Below, piece after piece: positions 483-45,564 of a stretch of 47,045 nt of DNA. The position numbers and the translations under genes were made by a program. Position 1 is the stretch's first letter. Each line of letters starts with the position of its first letter. The notes beneath the pieces are model-generated. The model saw only the letters and a program-made list of their open reading frames with translations. It did no database searches and was not told the DNA's origin. This DNA is from Basidiobolus meristosporus CBS 931.73 (Eukaryota > Fungi > Basidiobolomycota): contig MCFE01000677.1 in NCBI GenBank assembly GCA_002104905.1, positions 1 to 47,045 of the forward strand, written 5' to 3'.

Positions 483-1019
483 ATGAATTTCTTCACAAAC
501 ACTATACTTGCATACAAAAAGATACGTAATACTACTCAGAACTACGTCGAAGTGAAGCCCTCGACTGAAATCACTTGCCCGTTTGAAGATCAGGGTGATT
601 CACCGGACTCAGTGAGCCAGGAAAAAACCATACTTGACATACTAGGGGAGGAACGGGTGGAGAGGATTGTTGAGAGGTTCTATCATTATAACCTTACTGA
701 TAAGAATACCAAGGCTTTTTTCCAGGGAATCAATGTGGAGCGTTTACAGAGAATGCAAACCAGGTTTCTTGTCCATTTGTTAGGGGGGAAGGCCATCAAT
801 ACACGTAAGATGAGAGCCGCGCATAAGCGTTTACTGGACCTTAACGATCGACACTTTGATGCGGTTTTGAACAACCTGAGGAAGGCCGTGTGGGATATGG
901 GTATAAACCGGGAACTAACCAAGAAAATAATGGCTGCTGCAGAGACTACCCGAGACGATGTTCTTGGTAGGACACCGTTACCCAAACGGCAACCCTGCGA
1001 TGACCCTGATTTCGACTAG
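483..1019 (+). CDS. Group 1 truncated (2/2) haemoglobin, trHbN/GlbN-like, single exon
   Basis: 178-aa ORF with the group-1 2/2 globin pattern: TILDILG, IVERFY (B9-B10 FY), FF at CD1, RLQRMQTRFL (E helix), LGG, MRAAH (proximal His F8), HFDAV, RDDVLG. TATA-like TATAAA at about 431. Confidence 0.88.
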   Translation: MNFFTNTILAYKKIRNTTQNYVEVKPSTEITCPFEDQGDSPDSVSQEKTILDILGEERVERIVERFYHYNLTDKNTKAFFQGINVERLQRMQTRFLVHLLGGKAINTRKMRAAHKRLLDLNDRHFDAVLNNLRKAVWDMGINRELTKKIMAAAETTRDDVLGRTPLPKRQPCDDPDFD

Positions 1020-1939: not shown

Positions 1940-3028
1940 TCAAGCATCTCGTTGCCGTTTTGCAACAGGCGAACAGCATTCACCTTCTCCCGAGTTGTAT
2001 AGAAAATCGGAGGAGGAGTTGGTCGATGTGGTGCCTGGGTTCGTTGAGGAATGCAGCCATGCATCCTCCTCAAGCAACCACTTGAAATCAAACCCAGTTG
2101 TGTCTGGCATGGTGACTGGTGATAGAGGAGTATACTCCTCCCCAATGATCCCGGAAAACCCATTAACTGACAGGCTTTCTGTACCAAATCCCTTTCTCTG
2201 GGGCCTGGGCAGAGGGGAGTTGTTGATGGGGCCACCACCTTCGTAGCCCGGATAGTGCGGGGTGGATTTGCTCAGTGTGGGGATAGGAAAATAAGGATTC
2301 ATGAGATTGAGATGTGAAGTAGAGGGGATGAAGTACGGCTTCATGGCTGAGTTGCCCAGGTGATCTAACATCTCATCACAGTTCTGTCTCTTCAACGGGG
2401 ACCCCTCAGTGGCAGCAGTATCGATCTCTGAGGAGGGAGAATGCTTCCGTTTGCTCTTACTACGGTTGGGGCTGTATTTGTAGTCGGGGTACTTTTGCTG
2501 GTGGTCAAGCTTGATCTTTTCAGCCATCCACTGATACTTCCGCTTCTCTTCTACCGAGATATTCTTCCACATTTTCCCAATTATCCGAGATACTTCCATG
2601 TTGGTGATACCAGCGTTGGAGGCGAAGATCTCCGACTGCTTGTCACGGCGAAATAGGAAGAAGCAGTTGGCAGGCCGTGGGATTTTCGCCTTCTTTGGTT
2701 CAGAAGAGGCCTCTTCGGTTTCTTGTTGTTCGGAATGGACAGAAGTGGAATCGAAATTGCCATCTGGCCCAGGAGACACAAATTGTCGGATAGGTGGAGG
2801 GCTCATCATGCTTGGATAGAATGGGTCGTGGGGATGGCTCGGCTGTTGGTAATAAATCTCCTGTGCTTGATATGGGTTTTGGTACATAGCGTAAGGGACA
2901 TTCTCAGGCAATGAGGGATGGTAGGAGTGGGGCTGAGACTGGGACTGTGCTGTGTGGTTCCGAGACGAGGGATGAATCATATTTTGGGGGGAGTAGTCAT
3001 CGACTGTGTATAATTGTTGAGTCTTCAT
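1940..3028 (-). CDS. HMG-box transcription factor A (MATA/SOX-TCF class), single exon
   Basis: Complete HMG box at about 2468-2686: KIPRPANCFFLFRRDKQSEIFASNAGITNMEVSRIIGKMWKNISVEEKRKYQWMAEKIKLDHQQKYPDYKYSP. Q/P/Y/H-rich N-terminus, S/T/P-rich C-terminus. Confidence 0.92.
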   Translation of the reverse strand: MKTQQLYTVDDYSPQNMIHPSSRNHTAQSQSQPHSYHPSLPENVPYAMYQNPYQAQEIYYQQPSHPHDPFYPSMMSPPPIRQFVSPGPDGNFDSTSVHSEQQETEEASSEPKKAKIPRPANCFFLFRRDKQSEIFASNAGITNMEVSRIIGKMWKNISVEEKRKYQWMAEKIKLDHQQKYPDYKYSPNRSKSKRKHSPSSEIDTAATEGSPLKRQNCDEMLDHLGNSAMKPYFIPSTSHLNLMNPYFPIPTLSKSTPHYPGYEGGGPINNSPLPRPQRKGFGTESLSVNGFSGIIGEEYTPLSPVTMPDTTGFDFKWLLEEDAWLHSSTNPGTTSTNSSSDFLYNSGEGECCSPVAKRQRDA

Positions 3029-4648
3029 GGGCTGTCTATGCTATGATAGGAGAGGGGCTCGGATATGTATATCTATATATACGGATTTTGATGGAGCGCA
3101 ATTCAGGTGAGGATGTGTGCACTCGAGGTAGGCCTGGCTTAGCTTTTATAAAATCTCCCCTTGTGGTGTCCGATCGGAGAATTGATCCCAGCAATTCTTA
3201 CTGATGAATTCTCGTGGTTGTAGACAGATCTCTACACTAAGACGTGGCAGCATACCTTCGGAAAAGTTATTGTCGAGCGCTCTTTACTTCCTGCCTGGAA
3301 TTCAGTTTAATCCCCGATGCTGTAGGTCGCGTAGACTGGCCAGGCCTGCCTGCATCGGATTTGCGAGTATTCTTGGCTGGGATTTGGCGCGCTGGCTCGT
3401 CCAATGAACGGGTGCAGAAATCATGGTGGTTGCGAGCAATTTAGCGGAACAAGGGATTCTAGAGGCGATCGGACAGATCAGAACTCCGACTGTGCTTACC
3501 CAGTTCAAATTCACAACCATACATGATTGTTTGTTCACAATGGCAGGCCTGTGGTTAAATGGGTGATTAAGTTAACCGGCTGGCCACGCTCGTGGGCATT
3601 TAGTTTAATTCTTAACCCACCACTTCGAACACCCTTTGCTGAGGCTTCGCCACAGCAACACGGCTCAATTCTGGCCCTGGCAGTAGTGCACCCGCCCGCT
3701 AAACATCCAAAATATTCGGCTCGGATAAATCCTACACAAGGATATTTACCCACGTTGTTCTTCATCCCGACACTATTGATTACTCAAGCGTATGATGCCA
3801 CCACGTTTAGGGCGGCCGTCAGTCGACGAGGTTGACTCGGCATCTTTGAAACCTATTACGTATCTCGTCTCGAATTCAATGTGCGGGTGGTACCACTCAA
3901 TTGAGATCCGAAATCACCAGCGTCACCCTATCACCACATACTTTTGTAGCCGGACATACTGAGCAGGCCAAAATTGGGGTTCGGTTGGACACAGATATGC
4001 GAGATTCTAATGACAGGCATTGTGGGTCATTCAACTCCATCAAGTGCCAGCATGGAACTCATGCAGCCGCCAGAGGCTGGCTTGCGGTTGCTAAGGATCA
4101 TTTGTGGGCTCATCAGCAGCGTTATGTGAGGCTAGCCATCTCATCATCAGCAGCTCTTGATCACTACCTGAAATGACATGTAGACATGTGCAATGGATCT
4201 AGCTATGGAAATTCCCCCGGCGCGTGAGTAGGTATCCGCGGATTCCGCTCAATAGCAATCTCAATTTGAAACTGTCCCGCTTGACAGATGGAGTTAGTGG
4301 TAGCGTACCTCTCGATGTCGCCTAAAAACAAGTTTCACCCGGATTTAGAGTCAGGTTTACACAAGCGGTCCTTTCAAAAGAGCCTATCAAGTGATGATAT
4401 GAAAAATCATCGTTTGATGCAATATTGTATTTGGCATATAGCATAGAACGAATAAGAGCTTGTGACAGCTTTCTGGCCCAATCTCCTATTTCTGTAGAAT
4501 ACAGGTTATTGTATTGCCATATTATTCTAGCCTCCAGGCAATTCTGAGCGGCACGTAGGATATAAATATCTTCGCCGGTAGAATCCTCTCCCCTGCTTAC
4601 TACTTCGCAAGCTTTCCTGTCTCCTCTCTGTAACGTTTCTTTTTCAGA

Positions 4649-6620
<1,972 letters not shown>

Positions 6621-6981
6621 TTACCCCTCATTTTCCAACATTCGTCATGTCCGCAATTGCATCCATCTCTGACCATCATATCATATCCCCTTCGAGTCAA
6701 GTGATCCCACCTGTCCATCCACATTTGTCAGTCAACAATCCATAATAAACCCAACATACAATAGCAAAACCTCTCAGACTTACTATCATGCTAGATCACC
6801 GACCAATTGACAGGTGGTGACGCTTCGTTTCCTTTGGAACCTCGCTTTATTCCGAATGAAGCAAAGAAAACAAGTCACAAAACTCAATGTCATCAATGTT
6901 GGTTTATGTAAAAAAGAGCAAGGAAAGGAATGGAAAAAGGTAAAGGCCGCTGTAAAGTTTCAAGTAATCTTTGTGGGGGGG

Positions 6982-9900
6982 TCACTCCTCATCCTCATCC
7001 TGATAGTACTTCTTGAATTCGTTCGCTTTCCTTCTCGCGTTATTCAATTCTTTCTCGAGTTTAAGGATGGTCACTTGCTGCTCCATCTCCCGCAGCTTGT
7101 GGTCCTGTATCGACAGCTTCGATAAGTCCAAATCTTTCTCTTCTTTTCTACGCGCGGTGAATGCTTTGACAGCCTTGACAACATCGCGGGATGCATCGGT
7201 CACTGCACGTGATGCCAACTCCAGATTCTCCTGCGTCTTGGAATACATGTTGGCCTTCACACGAGCTGCAGCCACCAATTGGGCAGTTGCGGTGGCGACA
7301 TCGTTCGATGCATCAATCAACTGCTCAAGAGTATGAGTGCCTCGGATCACCCCATTGGCAACTTCAACAAGGGTGTTGGTTGCAGAAGAAACTCCTCTAG
7401 CAGCCGACACAAGCCCCTCAGTCCAACGGTTGTTCTTCTTGTAGTAAGCATTTTTGGACAAAGAGCCACGACCTTGGTCAACGATTTCTTGTTGGGAGGC
7501 GTGGGCGCAACGAACCAGGTTGACAATAGCCCGGGTCATAGCCGCAGCGGTGTCAAGGAGAGCATTGTGGATCTGATGATCTTCGCTAGACACCTCGGCT
7601 CGTTTGGGCTCATTGCGAAGATTCGAGAGTTTCTCGGTTGCATCTTCAACGGTGCGAGCAGCATTCAACATTTCCCGCTCAACTAAGGCAGCCAAGTCTT
7701 CCTGCCCTGCGGTGTGAGAATCCTTCGGTAGAAGCGCTTCAATCAGCTGAATTAGTCTGTTCAAGGTCACCTGAATATCATTGTTGCCTTTGGCGATCTC
7801 GTCTGGCCGATTGGTTTCGGGAATAGACAGGATGTTGGTAGACAACATATTGGTGAAAAATCCTTCTGCTGCTTCCGCAGAATACCTCCCAGATCGAATG
7901 ATTTCTTCCACCTGATCATCCTCGTCGGCAAGGCGAGTTACGCCCTTGACGTTGTCAAGAAGTTGAGATACCGCTTCGGCAAAGGCAGTGGCAGTATTGA
8001 TCACGGAGATCTGATCTTCAAAGTCCGTCAAGTACTGCAAGTAGCTAATAGCAAACTCGCTGGATGCAATGTATGCGCGTTCCACCATCGAGAGGACGTA
8101 CTGTGCAGTAGCAGATTGGTTTCCTTGCGTGGCGGGCGAAGTGAGCTCGAACGCGGCATCGTTCAACTTTTTGATACAACTACGGAACACCGAATCTTGA
8201 GTAAGGCGATTAGAGTCAAGCATACAGCCGTTCATATAAATCTCAATGCGACGTACCTAAGATTGTGTGAAGCTTGCTGGTTTGCTCTCCCCGAAGTGCA
8301 TCAACGCGTTTCTGAAGCTCGGACTCGGTAGCTGAGGATGTCTAGAGGCCATATGGAAAACAGCTCAACACCATTATTTGAACAAGTGTAGCAAATGGCA
8401 AAACTTACATCCTGTAACTCCGCCAATGCCATCAGGCTTTGGTCCATCCCCGCTTGTAAAATAGCAATCTCCTCCTCCTTAGCCTAATAAACTGCTTTAG
8501 CTAGCTAAAGATACAAAGGTTAATCTACCTAATGGCTTACCGCTGTTGCCTTATCTAGTTCATTTTTAACAATCTCCCAATCTCTAGCGATTCCTTCCTC
8601 AGCTTCACGTTTGTCCTATAGAGAAGGTACAATAAATCAGTGGTTCTCAAATTGCGGCATAAACTACATCACTAACACGAAGGACATCCTCCAGCTCCCT
8701 CTGCTCTTGCTCAAATCTTCTGCGCATGTCAGCCAATTCCCCACCAGCAGACTTTAGACAGGTTAGAATTCATCATTCGCTAAGCACTGTATTGCAGCTA
8801 TCTACCTCCATTAATTTCTCAATCTTAGCCTTAGAGTCATCCAACTCGCGCTTCATTCGAGTTAACTCCCCAGAATCAGCCTAGCATAGAATATTGAGTG
8901 ACGAGCTCAGTAAATCAATAGTTGCTGATAACATACCCCGCGTAGACGTTCGAGCTCATCCTTAGCCCGATCCCGCTCCCGAATCATATCCATTAGCTCG
9001 GTATTTTTTGCCTAGGCACAGATGTTTAGAACACTTGCCAGAACTTTGTGCATAAATCGACTCTAGCTTACTTTCAATTCAGACTGCATACGATCAAACT
9101 TATGAGTAGCTTCGGTGGCAGCATTAGCTTTAAGGTTGACTTGCTTGAGTTTCCCAAGAAGCTCAAGGTGCTCTTGACGGAGCTTGGCATAGATTTTAGC
9201 AAGAGCTTCGTACTTGGCTTTCCATTGAGCAATCTCATCTGTTTTCCACTTACGTGTTAGTAAAAATGCACAATGACGGTTTGATAAGTGAGAGCGAGTG
9301 CTACCTTGCAGCTGCTTTATCAAAGCATCAAGATCTCCGTCGTTTCGTTGATTCGCGAGGCCAAGTCTGGCCAATTCGTTTTCCAAGGCTTTGATTCGCT
9401 GGACACTCAAGATTAGAGATGTTACGAAGATACAGCTTACCAATACCTTTCTCTCACCTGGTCATATTGAGACATCAACATCATATCACGATCTTGCTGG
9501 TTACGATAATTCATGATTTCTTGCTCCAACTCATTGTATCGGTTTTGAGCTTGCTCTTGCATCTGTCTTTCTCTTAATAAACGCTGTTGCTCTTCGTATT
9601 CTTTTTGGAGTGCGAGTTGCTTCCTTTGTTCTTCTAAAGGATCTACTTTTGGCTCTTCGGGAGGTGGTGTAACATGACGAGGTGGCAAACGAGGGGCAGA
9701 GCTAGGACTTTGAGCAAGGAAATTTGGAGGATCCTGGGAAAATAAGCTCAATTGTTATTGAACCGCTTAAACTAGTATGAAGAAAAACCCACCTGGTCCA
9801 GTTTAGGGATAGCGATCAGACTTGTAAGATAACTGATATTTGAGCATTCGTAATAGAATTTCCTAAGAGCATAATGCTGGGCATTGAAACGTGCACGCAA

Positions 9901-10888
9901 AGGCTCCAACGGTTCGTGCGATTCGACACCTGGTACAATGTTGGGTTGCTTTAGTCGACAATACACACGCACCACCAATGCAAAAACAAATCCACTACTT
10001 ACGTCGATGCATCGCCATCAGCATTCTTGTTGCAAACTCGTAGATACCGTAGCTTTCTTCTACTAAAGGTACCAATGCAGAGATTCTGCACTCATTATCT
10101 GAAACGGGCCGGAAAGTCCGAAAGATTAACTTCTGGAATGTATCAATGCGATCTTGTAAATTCATTAAATCGGCAATCGTCTCGTAGCTACCGGGGAGTA
10201 TTCATATGAATGGTCAGGAACGCCCATCAAGGCCAAATATCAAGTACTGGCACCAGCACAGGCAAATAAACTTACCCTTCGTTGGGATCGTCGACACCTT
10301 TGACACTCACGTAATCTTCATAATCGAAATTTCCATTAAACTCGGGATGCAAACGGTGGTATTCGAGCTTTGCGATGATGAAATCAACATATGCTCGGAT
10401 AAGAACACCATAACCCTTAAAGCTATCTTGGGAGAACGACTGACTTAAAACCTCAAGAAAGCCAATCTCGTTCATTGCTTCACGTAAAGTCTGAACAAAA
10501 GTGTTTTTAGAAATCTATGGCAGCAGTTGATTTTTCAAAGGGAGCTAGCACTTACCACTGGGTGTCCACCACGAATGACTTTGTGGATGGTAATCAGAGC
10601 TTTAAAGCACTGCACTTCATCGGCCAGCAATGGCTGGACCTTTAACCCCATCCAAAAGGATTGCGAACTCTTGGCATCCCACGTATATACGATGCAACCT
10701 TCACGACGACATATAAGTAATTTTGCTCGGTGGTAGACACAAAACGTAAGGACCAGCTTAGGACACAGCTACTTACTTCTCACGTGCTTCTGTTTGGGTG
10801 CAGTCTCATCCGAGTTCACAGCCTTTTTAATGTTCATGGCGAGCTCTTGCTCGACCTTGTCTCTATCCGAATGACGGTGGGTAGCCAT
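6982..10888 (-). CDS. SLA2: Sla2/End4 (HIP1R family) endocytic actin adaptor, multi-exon
   Basis: N-terminal ANTH exons (MATHRHSDRDKVEQELAMNIKKAVNSDETAPKQKHVR; YHRLHPEFNGNFDYEDYVS), central coiled coil (WKAKYEALAKIYAKLRQEHL), C-terminal I/LWEQ domain (WTEGLVSAARGV...ATAQLVAAARVKA...QVTILKLEKEL). Confidence 0.95.
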
Positions 10889-11098
10889 CTTGTGCTTTGG
10901 CAATTAATGTAGACAAACTCGAAATATACAGTTGAATAATCACTTGCGTTGACGAAATTATCCTTCAAGATATCTCGAACAATCCAATAACATTCATATG
11001 GTTGATTTTGCGCATAAGTAAGATCACCTGATGATATCACTCGTACAGTCACAGTGATTTTCAAATATGCAAGCAACCTGAAAAAGGACTACGTTTAC
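10889..11098. promoter_or_regulatory. Short shared (bidirectional) promoter region between SLA2 and MDM35
   Basis: The two ATGs (10888 minus, 11099 plus) are head-to-head and 210 bp apart. Confidence 0.55.
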
Positions 11099-11329
11099 AT
11101 GTCTTCTCCGGAGCCCCCTTCAGAGTTCGACAAAGATTGCAGTCAACTGGAAAAGGCGTTCAACGCCTGCTTTGAAAAGTGGTATTCGAAAGAGTTCCTG
11201 AAGGGCAACACAGTACCCGATCCGAATTGCGAGAGGATTTTCAGAGAGTTTATTAGCTGTGCTAGTGTACGTGCCATATGCTCTTTGCTTGTAACTGATG
11301 TCAGGTACCCTAGCAAAAAGCCAGAGTAG
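11099..11329 (+). CDS. MDM35: Mdm35/TRIAP1 twin-Cys mitochondrial intermembrane-space protein (3' exon structure unresolved)
   Basis: CSQLEKAFNACFEKWYSKEFLKG...CERIFREFISC has twin CX9C motifs and the family CFxKWYSExFLKG pattern. Likely GTACGT donor after 11266; last exon not resolved. Confidence 0.75.
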   Translation: MSSPEPPSEFDKDCSQLEKAFNACFEKWYSKEFLKGNTVPDPNCERIFREFISCASVRAICSLLVTDVRYPSKKPE

Positions 11330-12030
11330 CTAATCCTGTTGTTGAAGCATTCACCACCCCCTAATCTCAGAGAAACAAGCCTACATAAAAAAGCAAATAC
11401 CAACTGTAGTGGAAAAAACCTATATCCAAGCATGCCTTCCGTAACGAATAATCGCTTACGAATGTATGCTCTATACTAGTCGAAATCTGAAACACATAGC
11501 GACCACGCTGCCTATGCCTACCCCCTAGCCACTATCTCCACCACATATGCCAGCAAGTCTAGGAATAAACTGGCAGATAATACACCCATTGAACCACGTT
11601 CAAATAACTTCGGGGTAATTTCTCGGCTGGAATGGTGATATTCTGGATGATTGAATACCAGAATATTCTCTGAAAAGAGGGAAAATCTCGGCGTATTAAG
11701 AGTCATCAGTTTGTGTTGATTGGTTTAAGGTTTTTTTTTGGATTTCTATATTCATCCAAATTACCATTAAGACATAGCGGATCCTGTAATCTTGATCTTT
11801 ACCACATTTAATTGGTGAGATAGGGATCTTTGTTGTATAACTCATACCGAGTATGGACCCTTAGAGCCAATATATAAAGCCAATCTGGGTCCTCACCAAC
11901 AGTAGAATTCTTCCCTAATTTTGTCTTTCATCATTAAACACCCGTTGTAAAGTATTCAATTGCGCACAGCACATCCAGCTGCTAATATCCTGCACTCCAA
12001 GATATTCTTGTGCATAAGACATCCCCTCTC

Positions 12031-12825
12031 ATGAGTGGCATTCCCCCCATCAAGTGTTTCTCTGGTGTTCCAGAATTTACGGTGAACTATTTACCGAACC
12101 AACCACCTGTTGTCTCTCGACCCAAGGAGGATTCCATATCTCTGGAGTTCGCTTTGGAGGAGTCCCCGGATTTTTTCAATGATTTCAACTCTAATGGCAC
12201 GCAAACACGTGAATCAACTGGCTCGATACCCGAAGAAGGCGAGTTCTTCTTCGTACCTAACGGATTTGTCCCGGTTTTGATGATGGACTCTATAGCCTCA
12301 GTGGTTGAGTATAACCTACCCCCCGAGGCAATCCCACTGAACCATCCAGTCTGGGTGCCTCATGACTATCCACTTCCTGCAAGCCTTTCAAAGAAGATAT
12401 GTCCAATCGCGCCCCCCCTCGCTGCTGTTCCTAAGATTCCACCCAAGGTCATAAGAAAAGAGAAGACCCCTCGTCCTACCAACGCATTTATCCTGTTCCG
12501 GCGGGAGAATCATGGAAGAATCTTCCAACAAAACCCACATCTCTCTAACAACGATGTGTCCAAAGCATTAGGCAAGGAGTGGAAAGAACTTCCGGAGAGT
12601 GAGAAGGAGGTATATCGTCGAAAGGCTCGCAGCCTGCAACAGGAACATCAGGAAAAGTACCCCGACTACAAATTTACCCCTCAGCAAAGCCGCCGCAAGC
12701 GTGTTCGCCCGATTAACGGTAGCGGATTGAGCCAGGAGCAGTCTGATGTTGTATCACCCCCGTCGAGTGGTAACCAGAATTCATTCCATATATTCTACAT
12801 CCCAAAAGTTGCGAATCTCAGCTAG
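12031..12825 (+). CDS. HMG-box transcription factor B (MATA/SexP-SexM-like class), single exon
   Basis: Complete HMG box at about 12469-12681: PRPTNAFILFRRENHGRIFQQNPHLSNNDVSKALGKEWKELPESEKEVYRRKARSLQQEHQEKYPDYKFTP, followed by basic RRKR. TATATAAA at 11871. First in-frame ATG at 12031. Confidence 0.92.
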   Translation: MSGIPPIKCFSGVPEFTVNYLPNQPPVVSRPKEDSISLEFALEESPDFFNDFNSNGTQTRESTGSIPEEGEFFFVPNGFVPVLMMDSIASVVEYNLPPEAIPLNHPVWVPHDYPLPASLSKKICPIAPPLAAVPKIPPKVIRKEKTPRPTNAFILFRRENHGRIFQQNPHLSNNDVSKALGKEWKELPESEKEVYRRKARSLQQEHQEKYPDYKFTPQQSRRKRVRPINGSGLSQEQSDVVSPPSSGNQNSFHIFYIPKVANLS

Positions 12826-14239
12826 GATTTGTTTTGCATATCCGGTTCATCATTTCATCGATTTCCAACTTTGGAAAGTATGTTGCAAGTAATAATTAGT
12901 CAGATGCTTGATGCTTTTGTATCTATTCCATCTCCAAATCTCTATTGTATAGAAGTTCATTCATGCCATCCGTATATCAGTGTCTGTAAATGAATATGTT
13001 GTTAGTGCTGTAAGTAAAGAATCCCTAATGTTTATTCGGTATTAAATGAATTCTGGAATGTAGCCAAATGAGGTATCATTGATCAAACCATGTTACACCA
13101 CACTGTGGGAAAATCAGGGATATCCCATGAAAATATTGGGTTTGTGCTGGCAAATGGACATGCGCGGGTGAGCTTAAAGATGGCAACGAACATTCCACCG
13201 TGGCCAATGGAGCCATAAACGCTCTATTGTCGACACAGTAGTTAGCCACCCTTTGAAAAGATTTGGCAATTGTGTGGCCAGATGCCCCCGGAAGCATAGC
13301 GCATCACTAATAGCTCGTACGATCGAAGTGGCTATAAAGATTTCCTGTTAGCGGTCCAGGAGAAATACCTTACTAATCCGGTAACATTGAGTACATATCA
13401 CCTGCTCCTGTCCATCGGTTCCACATTGCATGAGATTGCTTGGACGCTTGGCGCTTCATTGGTTCCAGTGGACACAACAGGATGGAATCAACAAAAACGA
13501 GGACAGGTGATGCCGGGGATGTCCAATCAACAGCGAGTTAGATGTGGAGTCTGCACCGCCCGCTAAATAGTGCCAGACAATGACCGTGAGGCTTTGATGG
13601 ATTACCATCCAGGTCCCAAATGACGGATACACACCGGTGAAACAGGAGTGCCAGGGCTCAGAGGGGTGGAATCTAGCTGCCATTCGCACATCGGTGGTGG
13701 CCAGCGCTTCGCTCCAGACGGAGCTTTATTGGATGTGCAATATGTTTCTCCGTTCCCAAAATAAAGTCTTTGTGAGGGAGCGTTACTAATTCAATCTAGA
13801 AATCGATACAGAGCACCGATTTCACTGCACAGGAAACGATCACTCATAATGAGTAACACAGAATAACTGCTGATAAGCTATTAACAAGTCACTCGCTGGC
13901 AATGAGTCTCGACTGACAACCACCGCCAGATCTGGATATTTGATCTTCGAAAAGAATCGAGATAAGAACTCACCCATCTCCCCTGGTTTGAGGCCCATGG
14001 TGGGTTGGTGAAAAAATCATGTGCGTATCGGTTTTTCTGTATTCAAATGGATAGTTGGTCGAGGGGAACAAAACCGGAATACAAGGGGATGGGTGAGGCA
14101 GGCAAGTGGGTGAAGGGGTACATCGAAAAGAAACGGGGAGCATTCGAGCGCACGAAGATGACGGCCTGTTGAGCAGTGCCCAGGTGAATCATATCAAGAA
14201 CCGTAGGTACATAACGCTGGGGTGCTCGGGCCTAAAGAC

Positions 14240-14722
14240 TTAATGAAACAACGCTCTTTCTTCGCTGCTGATCTGTTGCCAGATACTCATGATGATACGC
14301 GACGCCTCATCCCCATATATCTTACACTTGGCCAGCTCCACCATCTTGATGGCGTAGAAATTGGAGTATCCGCGCTGCATGCCTTCTAGCTCAGGTCCGG
14401 AGGGGGGAGCTTCCGAAGCGACGTATTTGCGAATCTTGGTGGGCACGTGTGCACTCGTTACTTGATTGGGGCCTTCTGGAGGCAAGTATGCAGACCATGA
14501 GGTTGCAGAGTCGTTGTACCCGTTTTTCGCGAGCTCGAAAAGCTTCTCCTCGCCGATCAACAACGCGCGATAGCCGCGAGGAATATAGTAATATCTACCC
14601 TCCTGGCGCTCCGAAAGGAGAGCAGTGACGTGTGAGGGAGGGCGGGAGATGGTGAGACTGACGTTCTTCTTGATCTGGCATTGTATTCCGCTAGATCCGG
14701 CTAATGCGGTTTGAGTATTCAT
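14240..14722 (-). CDS. ORF C: divergent, C-terminally truncated HMG-box-like protein, probable paralogue of HMG B
   Basis: C-terminus QRGYSNFYAIKMVELAKCKIYGDEASRIIMSIWQQISSEERALFH* aligns to HMG helices 1-2 (EASRIIMSIWQQISSEERALF vs EVSRIIGKMWKNISVEEKRKY of HMG A, 10 of 21 identical). N-terminal EGRYYYIPRGYRALLI matches EGEFFFVPNGFVPVLM of HMG B. Helix 3 is absent, so it may be a pseudogene. Confidence 0.6.
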   Translation of the reverse strand: MNTQTALAGSSGIQCQIKKNVSLTISRPPSHVTALLSERQEGRYYYIPRGYRALLIGEEKLFELAKNGYNDSATSWSAYLPPEGPNQVTSAHVPTKIRKYVASEAPPSGPELEGMQRGYSNFYAIKMVELAKCKIYGDEASRIIMSIWQQISSEERALFH

Positions 14723-15357
14723 GGCTTGGTTGGCGTAAACGGTGAGGAAAGGAGTCCTTAGGAATGGGGATTTGAGGATTTGTACAGTGATGGTGGATCC
14801 AGCTGTAGTGCAAATGCAACTTTCAGTTTGAGGAAACTCGTTGCATGCGATTTGTTATTTATAACAAATGGAGTTTCCGTCAAGATGGCTTTCATGGATC
14901 TTTCTCTAAACCGAATCCATACTATTACCATAGTCGGCCATGGAAATACTGGTTCGGATAATCATGGAATTGCATTCGATGGGTGGTGATGGCATTTGTG
15001 ATAGAGCGGAGTGTCCCGCTTTTCGAGCACAGGGTAACCAATGGGGGTAGATGAAGGGTTGCTAATTCTGGCCATGTTTGTTGGCTACTTCATGTGACAC
15101 TGGATGCTACGAAATCAGTTATTAAACGACCCACCGAGGTATTTGCCATTCCGGCACACCATCTCTCAGTTATTAACCACTCTATCGAGGTGCTTAGCAT
15201 CATGGCAAAATAACTCATTTTATTGTTCGATTTTATATTCAGTGTTTAGAGACAAGGGAAAAGAAATCATAGAACAGAAATTTACTGACCCTCAGATTAG
15301 AGTCTGTCCGTCTTACAGACATATCCGTCTGAAATAGATTAACCTAGGTAACTAAAC

Positions 15358-16827
15358 TTAGTTGGCCTCGGGGGATCGTCTAGGCGATGCGGTTTCACGG
15401 TTGTTTGGTGAGATGCTGCGACGAGGAGAGTGGTCGCGCTTAGGAGAGCGGCTGCCACGAGGGGAGTGGTCACCTGAGTTGGGCATACGAGGTGATACAC
15501 TGCGTTCGCCAGAGCGAGATCTTCTACGAGAAGTACTGCGTGGCTTGGGAGACCTGCTTAATGAGCGGCTATATCTAGAGCGGGAGCGAGAATTGGATCG
15601 GGAGCGTGAGCGATATCTTCTGGGTGATCTGCTGCGTCTAGGAGAGCGAGATCTAGAAGAGGGTCTTCCACGAGCGCCGCCTCCACCCCTTCAAAGTGAA
15701 CTCCAGTTAGATCTCTTGTAAAGTAAAGGTTGGTGATAATTGTTAGGCCATGAACACAAGTTCAAAATAAACCATTACAATCCCATAGTGAGAGCTAACA
15801 ATGAAACGTTCAATTACCGGCAATCCCGAGCTTTGTGGCCAGTTTCACCGCAAGAGCTAATAAAAAGAATGTGAATCATTGAGCCATCGAAGAAAATGAG
15901 TTGAATAGCCGTACAAACAGCGGTTCTCTTCGTATCTACATAGGGTCGGTTAGCTCCATGTTATCCACAACATAAATACGCGAAGACGACTTACCTTCTG
16001 GAACGAACACCTCTGAGTAAGATGGAATATTCAAACAGTTAGTACTCCAATCATGGATATTTTAATGAAGCTACAATCTCACCTGCCAGGTGGGTCGGGA
16101 CAGTCTCTGGCCCTATGGAATGGTAGATGTGTCAATTTAGCATTACATTTAGATCAATGCCGCTTAACCTGCAAACGGGCCAGGAACAATATACTAACCA
16201 ATGACCTACAAAAACAATCCTGGTTAGCTCACTATATCCAGACCATGAAGAAATAAAATCTGCTCTTGGTAGATGCATTGCATACCGCTATTTCCACAGT
16301 TGAAGCAACGTTCACCGCCTTTTTCTCTTTCCTCGGCACGACGGCCGCCCTTGGCAGCTTCGACGATGATTCTCTCACCTTCTAGCTTGTAGCCATCCAA
16401 AGCTCTAACGGCATCATCGGCATCTGATACAGAGGGGAGAAGTTAAGAACCATTCGGAGGGAAGTGCCTGTCAACAAAATAGTACCTCTATCGTCGTCGA
16501 ACTCGATAAAGGCAAAGGAGCTCTACAAAAGTGTTAATCATAAAACACGGGATAAGGCAGTGCTGAGATATATACCTTCATGTCAATGCGTCTGACTCTA
16601 CCATACTTGGAGAACATGTCATCTAGATCACGCTCGCGGACATAACGCGAAAGGTGACCTAATAAAATAAGAACAACGGATCAGTATTGTTAAGAACGAG
16701 TGATGAAGGATCCGACAAACTAAAAGCCATGGCAAGCCAAAAAGGTGTCAAGGCCATCGATCTACCCACCAACATAAACTCTAGTGTTGCCACGACGACG
16801 ATCTTCTCTCGAATCGTAATTTGACAT
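15358..16827 (-). CDS. SR splicing factor: RRM + two CCHC zinc knuckles + RS/SP domain (SRSF7/RS2Z-like), multi-exon
   Basis: Spliced reading MSNYDSREDRRRGNTRVYVG HLSRYVRERDLDDMFSKYGRVRRIDM..SFAFIEFDD..DADDAVRALDGYKLEG, then CFNCGNSGHWARDC and CFSCGETGHKARDC, then an RSRSP/RSP repeat tail ending RRSPEAN*. Confidence 0.9.
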
Positions 16828-17561
16828 TTCCTTTTCAATTATCTTCTTGAGTAAAAACCGCAAAAAGACTAGTGGATACAGAAAGACTGAATCTCGAAGA
16901 GGGATTAAAGGAGTGGACAAAAAGTAATAGTCCTATAAACCGATGTAGTTGAGATTGTTTTTCTTAGCCTCGAAAACCCATATTACTCAACTTTTTCTCT
17001 CATCACCTGACCCGGGATGAAGAAATTAGCGCATTCACCGAAATTTTCAACAGGTGATGATCGCTTGATAGAAGCGCTTCTGGAGCAGGACATCCGCTTA
17101 TGCCCTGATGTGGTTACTCTCTGTAATCAAGCCCCTATGTAGATGGCTTAGAAGGAGAGCCTCCCTTCCTCTAATCACACATTCCTTCCGGCCAAAAGAT
17201 CATTTTCTTCTATACATGCCATCAGCATCCGCATCACCAACAGCTCGTATTGGTCGCAAGCTGCGCTAGCAATACGAATCTCACTGTTTTCTACACTGCG
17301 TCGCCAAATAGCATGTATTTTGACTTCATCCAATAAGGGCGTTTCGTGGTATGGAATTTGCTGAATGGAAATGTGGAGGGTTACTCTTGGTCCATATTTA
17401 GAAAAGCTGAACATCAAATTTGTCATAATCTTCTGTTCAAAAAAAACTCACTTTAACAAACGTTTATCCCCCATTCCTGTCTGCACTTCTTTGAGTGGTG
17501 GTTTTATCATTAAGTTGACTTTACGGAAACCTGACTGCGTTTGCTAGCCTGTTAGTCTTCA

Positions 17562-25833: not shown

Positions 25834-26865
25834 TCAGGCGCTTGGCCTACTGTCTTCGATTTTCAATGTGAACTCATTGTTCTCTGTGTTCTTCATCGGT
25901 TGATAGGTGACCGGCTTTTTCGAGTCATCCAGGCCATAAATGTAGCTAGAGTATATTACCAAGGAAGAGCCTATAATGAAGACAAAGGTGACATGGAAGT
26001 CGAATAAATAGATCGAGCATAGACTGGACACGATGATCGATATGCTCGTAGCGAATCCTTTGAGGATGTTGTCGGCGTATTTAACCACCATGGCCACAAT
26101 GATCCCGCCACAGGCCTGGCACGCGATCGCCATGAATGTATATATATTGTAACCGTACCAAAAGCCATTGGACATCACGCTCTCTCCATCCATCCACAAG
26201 ATTCCCAAAAAGAAGGCCGGGAACAGGGAGAAAAATGAGAGCTGGATGTTACGGACCCAGAGGGAAGCGCGTGTTCCTTTGAGAATTTTCTCGAAGTACA
26301 CGCCAGCCAGTCCAGAGAGAACACAGGCACACACCACAGTGGCCAGGCCAAGTAGCCGCTGACTGCTCTTCTCCACGTCGTCCGAGATATCGGTCTTGAT
26401 TTGCACCAAGATCACCCCAATGGTGAGGAGAACCAACGAGAACCATTTCTTGGCTGATAGGGATCGTCGAAGTATGATGACAGTACAAAGCGCGGTGGTG
26501 AGAATCTTCAGTTGGTAAGTGACTTGGAAGGTGGCTGCGTCCAAGAGAGTGACCGCCACGTACTGTAGGTTATTCTGCAAGGTGTAAAGTCCGGCGGGAA
26601 TCATGAGTTTCCAGGCGTCTCTGCCAAAGATTTCGGAGAATATTTCTCCAGGCTGGATACGCCCCTTTGTTCTGAACTCGTCACGAGCGTGCATGTATAA
26701 GCATATGAACAGTTTGGAAAGCTCGGATAGCGCGACTGCTGTTGAGGTGGCGTAGCGGGGTTCAAAATGGCGTGACTGTCTCATGACAAGGACCAAAGCA
26801 CTATTTTGAACGACCAAGATGAGTAAACTCAAATACTTCATTGGAATTTTCTCTGGCAGTAACAT
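25834..26865 (-). CDS. Nucleotide-sugar transporter, SLC35A/UDP-galactose (Gms1-like), single exon
   Basis: MKYLSLLILVVQNS, STAVALSELSKL, IPAGLYTLQNNLQYVA, LDAATFQVTYQLKILTTA, SGLAGVYFEKILK, SLWVRNIQL, VVKYADNILKGFATSISII. Confidence 0.92.
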   Translation of the reverse strand: MLLPEKIPMKYLSLLILVVQNSALVLVMRQSRHFEPRYATSTAVALSELSKLFICLYMHARDEFRTKGRIQPGEIFSEIFGRDAWKLMIPAGLYTLQNNLQYVAVTLLDAATFQVTYQLKILTTALCTVIILRRSLSAKKWFSLVLLTIGVILVQIKTDISDDVEKSSQRLLGLATVVCACVLSGLAGVYFEKILKGTRASLWVRNIQLSFFSLFPAFFLGILWMDGESVMSNGFWYGYNIYTFMAIACQACGGIIVAMVVKYADNILKGFATSISIIVSSLCSIYLFDFHVTFVFIIGSSLVIYSSYIYGLDDSKKPVTYQPMKNTENNEFTLKIEDSRPSA

Positions 26866-27493: not shown

Positions 27494-28012
27494 TTATTGT
27501 TCCATGGCATCAGCAGATTTGGCAGAGCGGTCCTTGCGCTCAAGGAGAGCCTTGCGATCTTTGTCGAGCTTGAGGCTGGTGACAACAACCTTGGAGGGGT
27601 GGACACCAATAGCGGTGGTGGCACCGTTGACCTTCTCGCGAGTGAGACGTTCAATTTGGATGACCCACTTCTTACGGTAGACTTGGACAATCTTGCCTTC
27701 ACGGCCCTTGTAGGTACCACGAACAACCTGAACTTCGTCATCCTTACGAACAGGAATGGAACGAGCATGGTACTTCTCTCTCAACTCCTTGGAGAGAGCA
27801 GCAGACATGATCTTTCTTCTGATGCTAGAAGGAGCGGCAAAGTGGGCCTTGCGGCTCTTGCGGCGGGAGGAGCTGACGTCTACAAGAACAAGATTAGCAA
27901 ACTGTTTCGTGCGATTCCCGAGAACACTACCACAACAAAGACACTGTCGGGGCTACTCTCGTTGATGGATGGCGGTTGTGGAAACGGATTATTTACCTTG
28001 ACTGAACTTCAT
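27494..28012 (-). CDS. RPL26: 60S ribosomal protein L26 (uL24), two exons
   Basis: MKFSQ|[34 protein letters not shown]...[13 protein letters not shown]...KVVQ-like [17 protein letters not shown]...[25 protein letters not shown]. Confidence 0.97.
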
Positions 28013-31611: not shown

Positions 31612-32889
31612 TCAGGGGGATTTCTCTAATAGCGACTGGAACCAAGGATCCCAGAACATCTCTTCGACAGAAGGACGTTCGGCCGGATTGGGGTTCAACA
31701 TTGAGCGGATAAGAGGCAACGTATCGGATGGAATATTTCTGAAGAATTCATCTTCGTGACGATGCTTCAGAAAATTGGCGTATGCGCGGTTGGTGGGACG
31801 GGCAATCTCCCAGGGGAACTTGCGAAGAACCATGCACACGTACACAATTGCCAGCGACCAAATATCTGCTTTCGCTGGGTCATAGGGGGAGCCCTCGTGA
31901 ACTTCAGGTGCAATGTATGGGTCGGTCCCGGTTATAGATGTGGCGAGCTTACGCTTGCGGCTAAGCGAGTCGCCGAAGATAAATGCACAGCCGAAATCAA
32001 TCAACTTGATTAGCCCGTCTTCCCCAAGACAGAAATTTTCTAGTTTCAAGTCACGGTGTGCAATACCGCGCTGATGCAAATACTGCAGAGAGTTTACCAT
32101 CTGCACGAAATAACGATTGATCTGATGCTCGCCCATATTCACCCCTTTGAAGAGGGCCACCATATCCATTGAGCAAAACTCCATCACCTGGTGGATTTGA
32201 CCATCTTCTAGAGCCACGTCGATGGTTTTAATGATGTTAGGATGGTCGAGCGAAGCACCGATGTAGATTTCATTGCTGATGATCTCGTAATAATGTCTTC
32301 TCCCCTCAGACCCTCGAATGGGACGAAAAGTCTTGATCGCAAACTTCCCTCCACAAGCCATGGAATAAGTGGAATAGACCCTCCCGCCTGAACCCGAGCC
32401 CAACATCTCGGAAAAGGAGCCGTAAAGCTCGACAAGCGAAGGCTGGTTACGGCTCTTCAAAGCGATGATCAGCGGAAGATCATCTACCACTTCCTTCTTG
32501 AGCGGTCTCTTGTGGAATTTAGTTTTCAGGTGGGTGGAAAGCCGGGGCCCTCTTTGTGTTTTCCTCTTTGGATTCTGGATGGCTGAAAAAACAAATCGAC
32601 GGGAGATCTGAGACAGCTCTGAGATATCAACTTTAGTAACCTCCGAATCCTTGAGCGACTCGTCTGAGGTAAGGGTCGAGAATGTAGATAGTCCATGGGC
32701 GACAGGGAGAGTAAAGTCGGTGGTTGCTTCGAAGTGAAAGGTGGAAAGTGGATCTTCGTTGGCCGATACGAGGAACGGTTTCTCCTGGTAGAGACTTTTA
32801 TCAGAAGATTCGGGATAGAGCATTTTCCTTGATGCCTGACGGTTGAATATGCTGATGATTAGCCGTGGTCGACGTGGGTGTCGATGCAA
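31612..32889 (-). CDS. Ser/Thr protein kinase, fungal Npr/Hal (Hrk1/Sat4-like) family, paralogue 1, single exon
   Basis: GSGSGGRV, FAIK, ISNEIYIGASLDHPNII, HRDLKLEN, DFG, GTDPYIAPE, DPAKADIWS. The true start may be the downstream MLYPESS. Confidence 0.9.
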   Translation of the reverse strand: MHRHPRRPRLIISIFNRQASRKMLYPESSDKSLYQEKPFLVSANEDPLSTFHFEATTDFTLPVAHGLSTFSTLTSDESLKDSEVTKVDISELSQISRRFVFSAIQNPKRKTQRGPRLSTHLKTKFHKRPLKKEVVDDLPLIIALKSRNQPSLVELYGSFSEMLGSGSGGRVYSTYSMACGGKFAIKTFRPIRGSEGRRHYYEIISNEIYIGASLDHPNIIKTIDVALEDGQIHQVMEFCSMDMVALFKGVNMGEHQINRYFVQMVNSLQYLHQRGIAHRDLKLENFCLGEDGLIKLIDFGCAFIFGDSLSRKRKLATSITGTDPYIAPEVHEGSPYDPAKADIWSLAIVYVCMVLRKFPWEIARPTNRAYANFLKHRHEDEFFRNIPSDTLPLIRSMLNPNPAERPSVEEMFWDPWFQSLLEKSP

Positions 32890-34839: not shown

Positions 34840-36039
34840 ATGCAAGTCCCTGAAGTTGTATACACTATTGTTAACAACAAGCCATTTTATCAAACCAATT
34901 TCCATACCAACATAGCTCCTCCAAACAAGGGCCTTCAGATCCCTTATCACTCATACAGCCAAGCATCCTTCTCCCTTGCCGACTCCCACAAAACCAGCCT
35001 CTCTTCCTTCTCCACATTCACTTCCAACGACTCACAGTCATCTGGGTTTTCGGAAGACTCCGTTCCAGAGCGGTTTGTATTCTCGGCAGTCAAAAAGCAG
35101 TCCAAGAAGAAGCATTTCAAGCTTTCCAAACTACTGAAAGCCAAAGCCAAGTCCAGCAAAAAGGCTGAACCCAACCAGCTACCCTTATTGGATGCTTTGA
35201 AGAAGCGCGATCTTCCCTCCCTTTCGGAGTTGTACGGATCCTTCTCCGAATATATGGGTGCCGGTGCCAGCGGCAACGTGCGCTCAACATATTCCTTGCG
35301 TGACGGCAAGAAGTATGCAATCAAGACATACAAAGCCAAGCAAGAGGGTCAGAAGGATAAGCACTATTTCGAGCGTATTAGTAACGAGATTTACATTGGT
35401 GCATCGCTCTCTCACCCCAACATTATTCGTACAATCGATGTCGTAATGGAAGAAGGTCAGATTCACCAAGTGATGGAGTTCTGCCCTAACGATCTTGTCA
35501 CCATCATCAAAAGCGGACAAACAACTCAAGAAGAGATTAATGGATACTTCGTTCAGATGATGAAGGGTCTTCAGTATCTTCATCACCGTGGAGTGGCCCA
35601 TAGAGATCTCAAATTGGAGAACCTTTGCGTGGATGAGCAAGGCACATTGAAGATTATCGATTTTGGAAGCAGCTTTATTGTGACCAATCCTCTCGACTCA
35701 CTCCATCAAAAGTCCGCCACATCGCTGGTCGGAACTGATCCGTACATCGCACCCGAGGTTCATGCCAAGAAAGCATACGATGCCACTAAGGCTGATATCT
35801 GGTCAGCAGCAGTGGTGTTTGCAGCAATGGTTCTTCGCAAGTTTCCCTGGAAGGTGGCCCTGGAATCCGACAGCAGCTACGTCAAATTCCTTCAAAACCG
35901 GGACAAAGATGAGTTCTTCCGAGTGCTTCCTCAGCAGTCAGTGAGCCTCATCCGGAAGATGCTGGATCCCAACCCGGATAATCGTCCCTCAGTTGACGAT
36001 ATTTTCGAGGACTCATGGTTTCAATCATTGGTGTTGTAA
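34840..36039 (+). CDS. Ser/Thr protein kinase, fungal Npr/Hal family, paralogue 2, single exon
   Basis: GAGASGNV, YAIK, ISNEIYIGASLSHPNII, HRDLKLEN, DFG, GTDPYIAPE, DATKADIWS. TATAAAT at about 34772. Confidence 0.92.
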   Translation: MQVPEVVYTIVNNKPFYQTNFHTNIAPPNKGLQIPYHSYSQASFSLADSHKTSLSSFSTFTSNDSQSSGFSEDSVPERFVFSAVKKQSKKKHFKLSKLLKAKAKSSKKAEPNQLPLLDALKKRDLPSLSELYGSFSEYMGAGASGNVRSTYSLRDGKKYAIKTYKAKQEGQKDKHYFERISNEIYIGASLSHPNIIRTIDVVMEEGQIHQVMEFCPNDLVTIIKSGQTTQEEINGYFVQMMKGLQYLHHRGVAHRDLKLENLCVDEQGTLKIIDFGSSFIVTNPLDSLHQKSATSLVGTDPYIAPEVHAKKAYDATKADIWSAAVVFAAMVLRKFPWKVALESDSSYVKFLQNRDKDEFFRVLPQQSVSLIRKMLDPNPDNRPSVDDIFEDSWFQSLVL

Positions 36040-42700: not shown

Positions 42701-45078
42701 TTAAGTCAAGAGGGCTAAAATACTTAGCTCCAATTAATCTGTCCAAGAGGTTGTCAATTTGCGGTAGCAGATACACGTCCTTCTGGGTGATGGCGTTCAA
42801 TTTTTGGTAGTCAATGCAAAAGCGTTGCTTTCTGTCTTTCTTTGGGACTATCACTACAGGGGAGGCCCGTGGAGACTGGCTCTCTGTAATGATGTTGTCT
42901 TTTAATAAAGGCTCAATTGTATCTTTGATATAGTCTGTGTCAATTTCTGAGTTCCTATAGGCTTGTTGCTTGATGAGGTATTTGTTGGCAAGGCGGATTT
43001 GGTGATATACCCCAGGTATATGACCAATTACTTGGTTCTTAGAGAATACTTGGGCAAGCAGGTGTATTCCTTCTAGGAACTTGTCTTGTAGTGCAGGCAG
43101 TAGACTGGGGTCCACATCTAGTTTGAGGAGATCTTCTTCTGGTTCCTTGTTTGTAGGTGGTCCTTGGTTGTTTCCGTCAACTTCCTCTAGGTTTAACAAT
43201 GGCACACCTCTAGGCAATGTCACCATGTGTTGCCTGTTGTTAACCACTAAGCACTCCAGACTTTGCGTTTCAAATTTTGGTGGTATCCATACTTTAGGGA
43301 TCAAGATTCCTTCCAGTTGCTTGGATGCATTTGCTGCAGTTATCATTCATCTGCTTGTCAATTAAGCTATTGGTGTCACTAATGAGATCACCATCACACT
43401 GGCAGGTGGTATATTTATCACCTTTTGTGTGATGATCAGAGACTGCAATGGTTTCACCTCTTTGATTGTCACATTGATGCTATGCACCTTGCTCTCATTG
43501 GTGATATGTATCAGTGGGATACTTTTGGTATCCCACCTGAGTTCAGATGCACTGTAAAGCATATCCATCTTATGTTGGATAAACCAACTCTCACCAATGA
43601 GTAAGTTGTTGGCTGCAATGGGTAGAAACACAACATCTTGATGTATAATCAAGTTGCCTAGCCAGATGGGCAATTAGGCACCACTCCTACTGTTGTGTCC
43701 AGTAGGTCATTTGCTGGCTATACCCAAATGGTGTTGTTGGGGACTATATTTAACTTTGGATGTTTTGCTAATGATTCTGACATGATCAGCATAGAGGATC
43801 CTGTGTTGATAAGGGCAAGAATCTCCTTATTCTCTATATTTACCTTTACATATGCACCTTTATTTGGTTCTTGCAGGACCGTCTGGTTGACATGAAGGGT
43901 TGTTATCTCCTTTAATCCCTCTATCAGTTCCTTGACTAGATCCGGGGCCAGTCCCAGTAAATTGGTTATTTGGAGGGTTGCCTTGGTTTGCTCTAGTATC
44001 TTCATTATGGGGAATAGGCCATGGGAAGACATACTAGCATTCTTTGATCATTTCAACACTTCTTCCCAAGGCTCATTCTGCACCTCTTCACCTAATTCCG
44101 TGTTCTTTCCTTTTGATGGAACCTCTACTACAGGTTCCTTTGCCTCTTCTCTAGAAGCATCATGTTGACGCTTCTTCTTTTGTACTTCAACTGTTCTGAC
44201 CAGACGACTTAAATTGACTGAGTTCTGTTGGCCTCCTGGCAAGGGACTCTGTCTTTTGATGCCTTCTTCTCTTTTGTGTCTGGTACGGGCTCTTGTCCAT
44301 ACCATTTTTCACATTTGTGGGCTTGGTGGCCTACTTCTCCACATACATAACATGGGCACTGTTGTTGTGGTTGTTCCATCTGTTAGGTCAGGGCTTGTAC
44401 CTGGGCCTTTAAATCTACAACAGCTTCCCAGAGTTTATCACCTTCTTTGGGGACTTCTTGGACATTGTTGAGTAATTCCTCTAATTCACAGTCTTTCAGG
44501 GAGGCAACTTTTTCTTTCTTACAGGGGATCCCTGTCCTTCAATCATTTGTATCACTACAGGGTAGCCCCCATAGCAAGATGATCCTTTGTACTTGTTTGA
44601 CCAACTCTTGCAATGTATTACAACCCTGTTATTCTTTGGATACCCTATGTCTTATTTTGTTGTCTAAGCCCATGATGTAATACCTCATGAGCTGTTGTTT
44701 GGTGATTTTGTCCTTTGGGAGACATTGGACTTGTTGAAGAAGCAGTTCAATGTAGGCTTCATAGCTGTCACTGCTTTTCTTCTGTGAGGACAGTAGAAGG
44801 GCTTTGTAGTGGTATCCTTTGGAATATAGAAAGCGTGTCTTGTGGCTTCTTCTAGTGCATCCCAGTCATCTTTAACTGTTTCTTCCAGCCCATAATTCTA
44901 TTGCCATGCTGACCCTTCCATATGTCTTGTAAACTCCCTTACTTTCTTATTGTCATCCCATCCTGTGTCAACCGCAACTCTCTCAAACTTATCAAACCAC
45001 TCAAGGGCTTTCTCTCTCTTTCCCTTGTATGTGTTTAGTTTGATTGTAGTAATCATTACCTCACTTGTGCTTATTTCT

Positions 45079-45093
45079 GCAGAGACGGCACCA
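45079..45093 (-). promoter_or_regulatory. Gypsy primer-binding site TGGTGCCGTCTCTGC, probably tRNA-His
   Basis: Begins TGG 4 nt after the LTR end. TGGTGCC(G/A)TCTC is complementary to fungal-type tRNA-His 3' ends; tRNA identity is inferred. Confidence 0.6.
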
Positions 45094-45097
45094 AATA

Positions 45098-45473: not shown

Positions 45474-45564
45474 CTGTATACCTTAACAATGTTGTAAAAA
45501 TTGTAATTCCACCTAAATATTCACCTTAGTCACCTAGACCATCACCTTCAAATCCTAGAGAATA

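Follow-up and report, generated by a model that had tools for sequence, protein, structure and literature searches.

HMG-box genes around SLA2 in Basidiobolus meristosporus: conservation, duplication and possible roles

We present an analysis of a gene cluster in the fungus Basidiobolus meristosporus CBS 931.73, in which two HMG-box genes (HMG A and HMG B) and a third, diverged open reading frame (ORF), here called ORF C, lie around SLA2, the gene for an endocytic adaptor. The cluster occupies positions 1940 to 14722 of contig MCFE01000677.1, whose 47,045 nucleotides (nt) are referred to below as the window. The original prediction, made from the sequence alone, regarded the cluster as a candidate mating-type (MAT) locus of an early-diverging fungus and took the linkage between SLA2 and HMG genes as a possible sign that SLA2-MAT synteny is much older than Ascomycota. 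The early-diverging placement agrees with our searches, in which the nearest proteins all come from Basidiobolus. The results suggest that the cluster is probably specific to this genus and that its SLA2 linkage was not inherited from an ancestor shared with Ascomycota.

Genes of the locus and their HMG boxes

Six genes are found within 13 kb in the order HMG A (-), IDP (+), SLA2 (-), MDM35 (+), HMG B (+) and ORF C (-), and SLA2 is located 1.2-4 kb from HMG genes on both sides. The features of the locus and of its right flank are the following:

1940-3028, minus strand: HMG A, intronless, 362 amino acids (aa), with a SOX/MATA-type HMG box at residues 116-184 (Pfam HMG_box, 6.8e-21)
~4645-6620 (ends approximate), plus strand: IDP, NADP isocitrate dehydrogenase, several exons, collinear with a B. 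ranarum PF00180 Iso_dh gene at 70.6% nt identity
6982 to ~10864, minus strand: SLA2 "type I", endocytic adaptor with ANTH and I/LWEQ domains, several exons, mapped with B. meristosporus SLA2
6982-8235, minus strand: last exon of SLA2 (Pfam I_LWEQ, 2.6e-48)
11054-11329, plus strand: MDM35-like twin-Cx9C protein, first exon or ORF (Pfam UPF0203, 2.6e-11)
12031-12825 (ORF 12010-12825), plus strand: HMG B, intronless, 264 aa, with a SOX/MATA-type box at residues 153-221 (Pfam HMG_box, 1.2e-24)
12826-14239, no strand: spacer between HMG B and ORF C, separating their convergent 3' ends, with one short conserved block at 13371-13426
14240-14722, minus strand: ORF C, 160 aa, probably a diverged HMG B paralogue with an HMG-like domain that ends early in helix 3
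15207-17073, minus strand: right-flank "SR gene", collinear with a B. ranarum gene of 293 aa, an orthologue that has no Pfam domain

ORFs, Pfam matches and collinearity with B. ranarum place HMG A, IDP, SLA2, MDM35, HMG B and ORF C at or near the coordinates originally proposed. The ANTH region of SLA2 aligns with residues 7-155 of B. meristosporus SLA2 and its I_LWEQ domain is C-terminal, the same combination that is annotated in the B. ranarum orthologue. The MDM35-like protein likely starts at an ATG ~45 nt inside the ORF, and the likely start of HMG B at ATG 12031 is deduced from the alignment of its family. To the right of the SR gene, PSS, RPS15, the gene for an acidic ribosomal P protein and Nop52 follow in the same order in both species. 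Scans for Rfam families and tRNA genes gave no match in the window.

The boxes of HMG A and HMG B align over the motif PRPxNxF...W...YPDYK(Y/F)xP and reach Pfam HMG_box scores of 74.9 and 86.9 bits, respectively, against a gathering cut-off of 25.4. When compared with proteins in the PDB, HMG A scores 43-58 bits with SRY/SOX and 27-39 bits with HMGB boxes, while the corresponding ranges for HMG B are 51-64 and 31-41 bits; the best matches are SOX17 and SRY for HMG A, and SRY and SOX2 for HMG B. This comparison separates SRY/SOX-type boxes (highest scores ~49-64 bits) from those of the HMGB/UBF type (~30-40 bits), whereas MATA and SOX boxes are not separable without named fungal references. The shared motif, together with SRY/SOX scores far above those for HMGB, bears out the earlier assignment of both boxes to the sequence-specific MATA/SOX type, and HMG A and HMG B are genuine HMG-box genes of this type. 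It was also correctly noted that all three HMG genes, ORF C included, are intronless, as each is a single uninterrupted ORF in the window and has a single-exon model in B. ranarum. HMG B carries in addition an N-terminal region specific to its family; in the AlphaFold2 model the box alone folds, with helices at residues 158-174, 180-193 and 196-216.

Relatives of both genes are found within Basidiobolus. HMG A is 66% identical to its B. ranarum orthologue K7432_001170 and 48% identical to a paralogue, K7432_009334, and HMG B has four relatives in B. ranarum with 74, 62, 55 and 50% identity. The ratio of non-synonymous to synonymous substitution rates (dN/dS) between HMG B and B. ranarum is 0.06-0.12, and at the nucleotide level HMG B is, at 78% identity, the best-conserved non-ribosomal gene of the locus. 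A word-indexed protein search found no full-length relative of HMG A or HMG B outside Basidiobolus, and searches restricted to the box returned only Basidiobolus relatives plus a few Sox or unnamed proteins. On the basis of these sequence comparisons, we regard HMG A and HMG B as two different genus-restricted families.

Not all members of these families are linked to SLA2. One B. ranarum paralogue of HMG B (P0003) is found in an unrelated neighbourhood among Htd2, CHCH, HAD and kinase genes; the CHCH gene of that neighbourhood and MDM35 were considered as markers of a paralogous block, which was rejected because the two have no similarity. A B. ranarum paralogue of HMG A (P0006) lies away from IDP and SLA2, with RsmB-like, RPL26, RPL35Ae and two unknown genes as neighbours. 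An RPL26 gene is also present in the window at 27494-27880 (-), ~13 kb to the right of ORF C, and the RPL26 copy ~3.6 kb from P0006 (positions 1809-2454 of that locus) has 92% aa identity. The region around P0006 may be a rearranged paralogue of the right part of the window, or the resemblance may be merely that of two ribosomal gene copies.

ORF C and its relation to HMG B

ORF C had been described as a degenerate HMG gene. It gives no match to the Pfam HMG family, even at E 10, and its matches to the OB2 domain of BRCA2 were disregarded as short and below the cut-off. An N-terminal motif of ORF C, EG-x-YYIPRGY-xx-LL at residues 41-56, is matched by hhalign (P 0.003) to EGEFFFVPNGFVPVLM at residues 76-91 of HMG B, and the motif precedes the box asparagine by 80 residues in ORF C and by 82 in HMG B. 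Residues 122-160 resemble helices 1 and 2 of the HMG A box (blastp E ~0.001, in a tiny database), and in a six-frame scan with the HMG hidden Markov model (HMM) the best sub-threshold matches are the three available copies of ORF C. The HMG kinship of ORF C is thus supported by three weak, collinear signals that tie it to the HMG B family.

The AlphaFold2 model of ORF C is confident only at residues 110-160 (pLDDT 84-91), where it contains helices at 110-132, 137-150 and 153-159. A Foldseek search with this model gave no significant match; the top of the list consists mostly of HMG boxes, aligned over ~45 columns at 1.2-2 Angstrom. Comparison of the helix ends with the helices of the HMG B box indicates that ORF C stops about seven residues into helix 3, and the basic PRPxN strand is missing at the other end of the domain. 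We considered a continuation exon that would complete the box and rejected it, because the in-frame stop has been retained and, in both species, none of the frames beyond it encodes a YPxYK-like peptide. ORF C is best read as a paralogue of HMG B that has diverged and been truncated, and it probably no longer binds DNA in the manner of a normal box.

While the domain is truncated, the gene does not appear to be decaying. The product is 160 aa long in the window and in one B. ranarum copy, and 158 aa long in the other; all three copies share the end ...EERALF(H/R)-stop. ORF C is annotated as a gene in B. ranarum, and the comparison with that species yields a dN/dS of 0.11-0.17 with saturated dS, which argues that it is a constrained gene rather than a relic. 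Of the original description, the kinship to HMG genes is therefore retained, through the weak collinear signals and the truncated domain, and the notion of degeneration is not.

Two observations concern the noncoding sequence next to ORF C. The stop codon TAA is directly followed by GT in both species, with the sequence TAA-GTCTTT in the window (14238-14243) and TAA-GTGGTT in B. ranarum (~12150), and this GT could mark the conserved 5' splice site of an intron in the 3' untranslated region (UTR). Of the 1.4 kb that separate HMG B from ORF C, only the 56 nt at 13371-13426 align with B. ranarum (78.6% identity); this block has no match in Rfam and could represent a shared 3' UTR or regulatory element.

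Conservation of the cluster and duplication of SLA2

The cluster is conserved in B. ranarum, where contig JASJQH010006900.1 contains, in the same order and orientation, HMG A, Iso_dh, SLA2, HMG B, ORF C, the 293-aa gene, PSS, RPS15, the acidic ribosomal protein gene and Nop52. The two sequences are collinear over ~22 kb with 66-83% nt identity and dS above 1. Another copy of part of the locus lies on the 9.9-kb B. ranarum contig JASJQH010007640.1 and consists of SLA2' (-), HMG B' (+) and ORF C' (-) at ~70-74% nt identity, with HMG B' 62% identical to HMG B. Of the two B. ranarum blocks, only the main one includes MDM35. The recurrence of the three genes in the second block implies that the SLA2-HMG B-ORF C trio predates the older duplication.

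Two types of SLA2 exist in Basidiobolus, and they bear on the age of the linkage between SLA2 and HMG genes. The SLA2 proteins nearest to that of the window are those of B. meristosporus itself. In addition to the HMG-linked type I gene, strain CBS 931.73 has a type II SLA2 in two collinear 23-kb copies (MCFE01000346.1 and MCFE01000580.1, 84.8% nt identity), with Nup35, ELL, RagA, SLA2, a membrane protein, an MFS and a C2 gene in its neighbourhood. Neither annotation nor the six-frame HMM scan detects an HMG gene at the type II loci. Over the C-terminal 400 aa, the type II protein is 57% identical to the SLA2 of the window. In a maximum-likelihood tree, types I and II form a single Basidiobolus clade (97/97) with stem lengths of 0.6 for type I and 0.23 for type II, from which it follows that the SLA2 linked to HMG genes stems from a duplication specific to the genus and is the faster-evolving, more diverged copy. 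SLA2 has thus passed through at least two rounds of duplication in Basidiobolus.

For comparison outside the genus, SLA2 proteins were found by exhaustive search and 10 kb on each side were read in six early-diverging genomes, namely three Kickxellomycotina (Tieghemiomyces parasiticus, Ramicandelaber brevisporus and Smittium angustum), the Mortierellomycotina species Dissophora ornata, the chytrid Gaertneriomyces semiglobifer (Chytridiomycota) and Neoconidiobolus thromboides (Entomophthorales). In none of the six is an HMG box found within this distance, either by annotation or by the six-frame HMM scan, and neither of the two Basidiobolus SLA2 neighbourhoods resembles any of theirs. The SLA2-HMG linkage is therefore missing from all six genomes sampled outside Basidiobolus, and together with the duplication history of SLA2 this means that an inherited SLA2-MAT synteny older than Ascomycota is not supported.

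We also searched for idiomorphs by comparing the contigs of four DNA runs over positions 10300-16200 of the window. The source sample contains two versions of the locus at a ratio of ~1:2, one identical to the window (0 differences, depth ~50) and a second that is ~88% identical (depth ~100). This second version spans SLA2, MDM35, HMG B, ORF C and the right flank with the same genes, and spacer sequence is replaced in parts only, including the spacer between HMG B and ORF C. Both versions are present in a second isolate, and a third organism has two versions that are ~88-90% identical to the window. Consequently, the allelic dimorphism that the original prediction had proposed to look for is not apparent: no idiomorphs are seen in the source sample, the second isolate or the two B. 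ranarum blocks, a result that is uninformative for a homothallic species, which would show none anyway. A MAT-specific reading of the two versions was rejected. The versions diverge to a similar degree in genes and flanks, and the unrelated type II locus is duplicated as well (84.8%, 23 kb), which suggests genome-wide duplication or homeology rather than mating-type dimorphism. The ~1:2 ratio and the presence of both versions in a second isolate favour fixed homeologues or unequal ploidy over segregating alleles.

Several other features of the window are located farther from the cluster. Just beyond HMG A, an intronless 178-aa ORF at 483-1019 (+) encodes a globin domain of the bacterial-like (truncated) kind (PF01152, 1.8e-11); many genes of bacterial origin have been reported in Basidiobolus (PMC7466969), and this ORF could be one of them. 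Two intronless protein-kinase genes in divergent orientation, paralogues that encode 425 and 399 aa, are found at 31612-32889 (-) and 34840-36039 (+), and besides the kinase domain they have an N-terminal region in common (RFVFSA..., LPL(I/L)..LK.R..PSL.ELYGSFSE). Retrotransposon remains occupy 40500-47045, including a reverse-transcriptase fragment at 42660-43346 (-), an integrase-like tail at 40543-41001 (-) and a copia-type gag at 46006-46458 (+). AT skew is strongly negative across 40-45 kb of the window.

Comparison with mating loci and interpretation

The locus has several points in common with MAT1 of ascomycetes, in that SLA2 lies directly beside HMG-box genes and, as in homothallic species, several HMG-type genes with boxes of the sequence-specific kind occur at one locus. 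It differs from the ascomycete arrangement (SLA2 - MAT1-1/MAT1-2 - APN2) in that IDP and MDM35 are interleaved with the HMG genes and the SLA2 involved is a genus-specific paralogue. No match to the alpha-box family (PF04769) is found in the ORFs of the window. The MAT HMG genes of Pezizomycotina have an intron that splits a conserved serine codon in the box (10.1101/2025.08.27.672719), whereas HMG A, HMG B and ORF C have no intron at the box serine.

The sex locus of Mucorales is flanked by genes for a triose-phosphate transporter (TPT) and an RNA helicase, not by SLA2 (PMC3834313). Like that locus, the Basidiobolus cluster belongs to a zygospore-forming host outside Dikarya and contains HMG genes as candidate sex determinants, and the divergent pair of HMG B and ORF C recalls sexM and sexP. 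In contrast to the Mucorales locus, the neighbours here are globin, IDP, SLA2, MDM35, the SR-like gene and PSS, and in contrast to the sexM and sexP alleles, HMG B and ORF C stand side by side in one genome and ORF C has no complete box. In agreement with the original prediction, neither APN2, TPT nor RNA helicase turns up in the ORFs that were scanned or in the annotated neighbourhood of B. ranarum, with the limit that intron-split genes in the 23-40 kb part of the window were not exhaustively modelled; a transporter at 25834-26865 was considered as a TPT and rejected, as it is a Nuc_sug_transp protein (PF04142).

HMG factors are also common outside mating loci. Podospora anserina has a 12-gene HMG network that includes factors outside the mating locus (PMC3730723), and arbuscular mycorrhizal fungi have multiple copies of SexM-like genes (PMC3834313). 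As in such systems, the Basidiobolus genes are lineage-expanded SOX/MATA-type paralogues that are scattered and not all located at a mating locus; the difference is that three of them are tightly clustered here and that the cluster was kept through duplications. In Phycomyces, sexM groups with SOX and sexP with MATA_HMG boxes (PMC2999568), and box class is therefore no predictor of mating function.

We consider it probable, with a good deal of room for doubt, that the locus is a cluster specific to Basidiobolus, in which genes for sequence-specific HMG-box transcription factors are interspersed with housekeeping genes. According to this reading, ORF C would have arisen as an inverted neighbour copy of HMG B that kept the N-terminal motif of the family and lost the DNA-contacting N-terminal strand together with most of helix 3, and it would most likely act as a non-DNA-binding partner or antagonist. 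The linked SLA2 is one of two paralogues from a duplication inside the Basidiobolus lineage, and large-scale duplications in these genomes copied the SLA2-HMG B-ORF C block again. HMG A and HMG B would presumably bend DNA and regulate a developmental programme, sexual or not, and the likeness to the SLA2-MAT arrangement of ascomycetes would be lineage-specific, a product of chance or convergence rather than of inherited synteny. Several points weigh against this reading. Three HMG-family genes from at least two families within 13 kb are more than random scatter of the families gives, and SLA2, HMG B and ORF C have stayed together through two rounds of duplication; MDM35 was lost from one copy. 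SLA2 is, moreover, exactly the gene that flanks MAT in Ascomycota, and a convergent, very divergent HMG pair would be the expected look of fused idiomorphs in a self-fertile fungus.

The alternative that survives best, which we nevertheless regard as rather unlikely, is that the cluster is a sex-related locus of a self-fertile Basidiobolus, in which HMG B and ORF C are former idiomorph genes fixed tail to tail, HMG A is a linked accessory regulator and the linkage to SLA2 arose independently of Ascomycota. It would account for the SOX/MATA-type boxes of HMG A and HMG B, for the common N-terminal motif of a convergent pair that is otherwise very diverged, and for the purifying selection on HMG B and ORF C and their continued linkage in two paralogous blocks and across all Basidiobolus genomes analysed. 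Basidiobolus species have been reported to be homothallic or heterothallic, depending on the species (PMC7466969), and the place for such a locus is vacant, since according to a 2023 review the genetics of mating in Zoopagomycota is not understood and no mating locus is known there (PMC10386755), as the original prediction had also stated for this lineage. However, idiomorphs are seen in no genome or version, the class of the boxes is uninformative in this respect (PMC2999568), and the multi-copy SexM-like genes mentioned above (PMC3834313) speak against it as well. At least four B. ranarum genes are paralogues of HMG B, one of them in an unrelated neighbourhood, and the conservation of HMG B is unusual for a mating gene, as such genes typically evolve fast. 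Adjacency to SLA2 is weak evidence by itself, because scanning very many windows is bound to meet chance neighbours among HMG genes and MAT-flanking genes, an argument from reasoning and not from computation.

We consider it very improbable that ORF C is an HMG pseudogene in decay and that the cluster remains from tandem duplication, without joint function; the truncated box and the missing Pfam match would fit such decay, but start, length and stop are alike in the three copies across saturated synonymous divergence, the low dN/dS indicates constraint and the ORF is called as a gene in B. ranarum. Least probable of all is an SLA2-HMG linkage ancestral to terrestrial fungi, with the ascomycete SLA2-MAT region and the Basidiobolus locus both derived from one ancient sex locus: SLA2 does lie close to HMG genes on both sides, in an association that predates the divergence of the two Basidiobolus paralogous blocks, but the linkage is missing from the six outgroup genomes and from the second SLA2 type of Basidiobolus, the linked SLA2 is the more diverged, genus-specific paralogue, neither APN2, an alpha-box gene nor the box-serine intron (10.1101/2025.08.27.672719) is found, and the Mucorales sex locus has other flanking genes (PMC3834313).

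The negative outcome for inherited synteny has consequences for how such loci are interpreted, in that adjacency of SLA2 and HMG genes outside Ascomycota is not readable as ancient synteny without outgroup sampling. ORF C also deserves attention in its own right, as an HMG-derived protein that is conserved and breaks off early in helix 3. If the cluster were sex-related after all, it would be the first such locus of Zoopagomycota and a convergent case of SLA2-MAT association. With no sex locus characterised in Zoopagomycota (PMC10386755), the conserved cluster of three HMG genes provides a concrete and cheap entry to that question.

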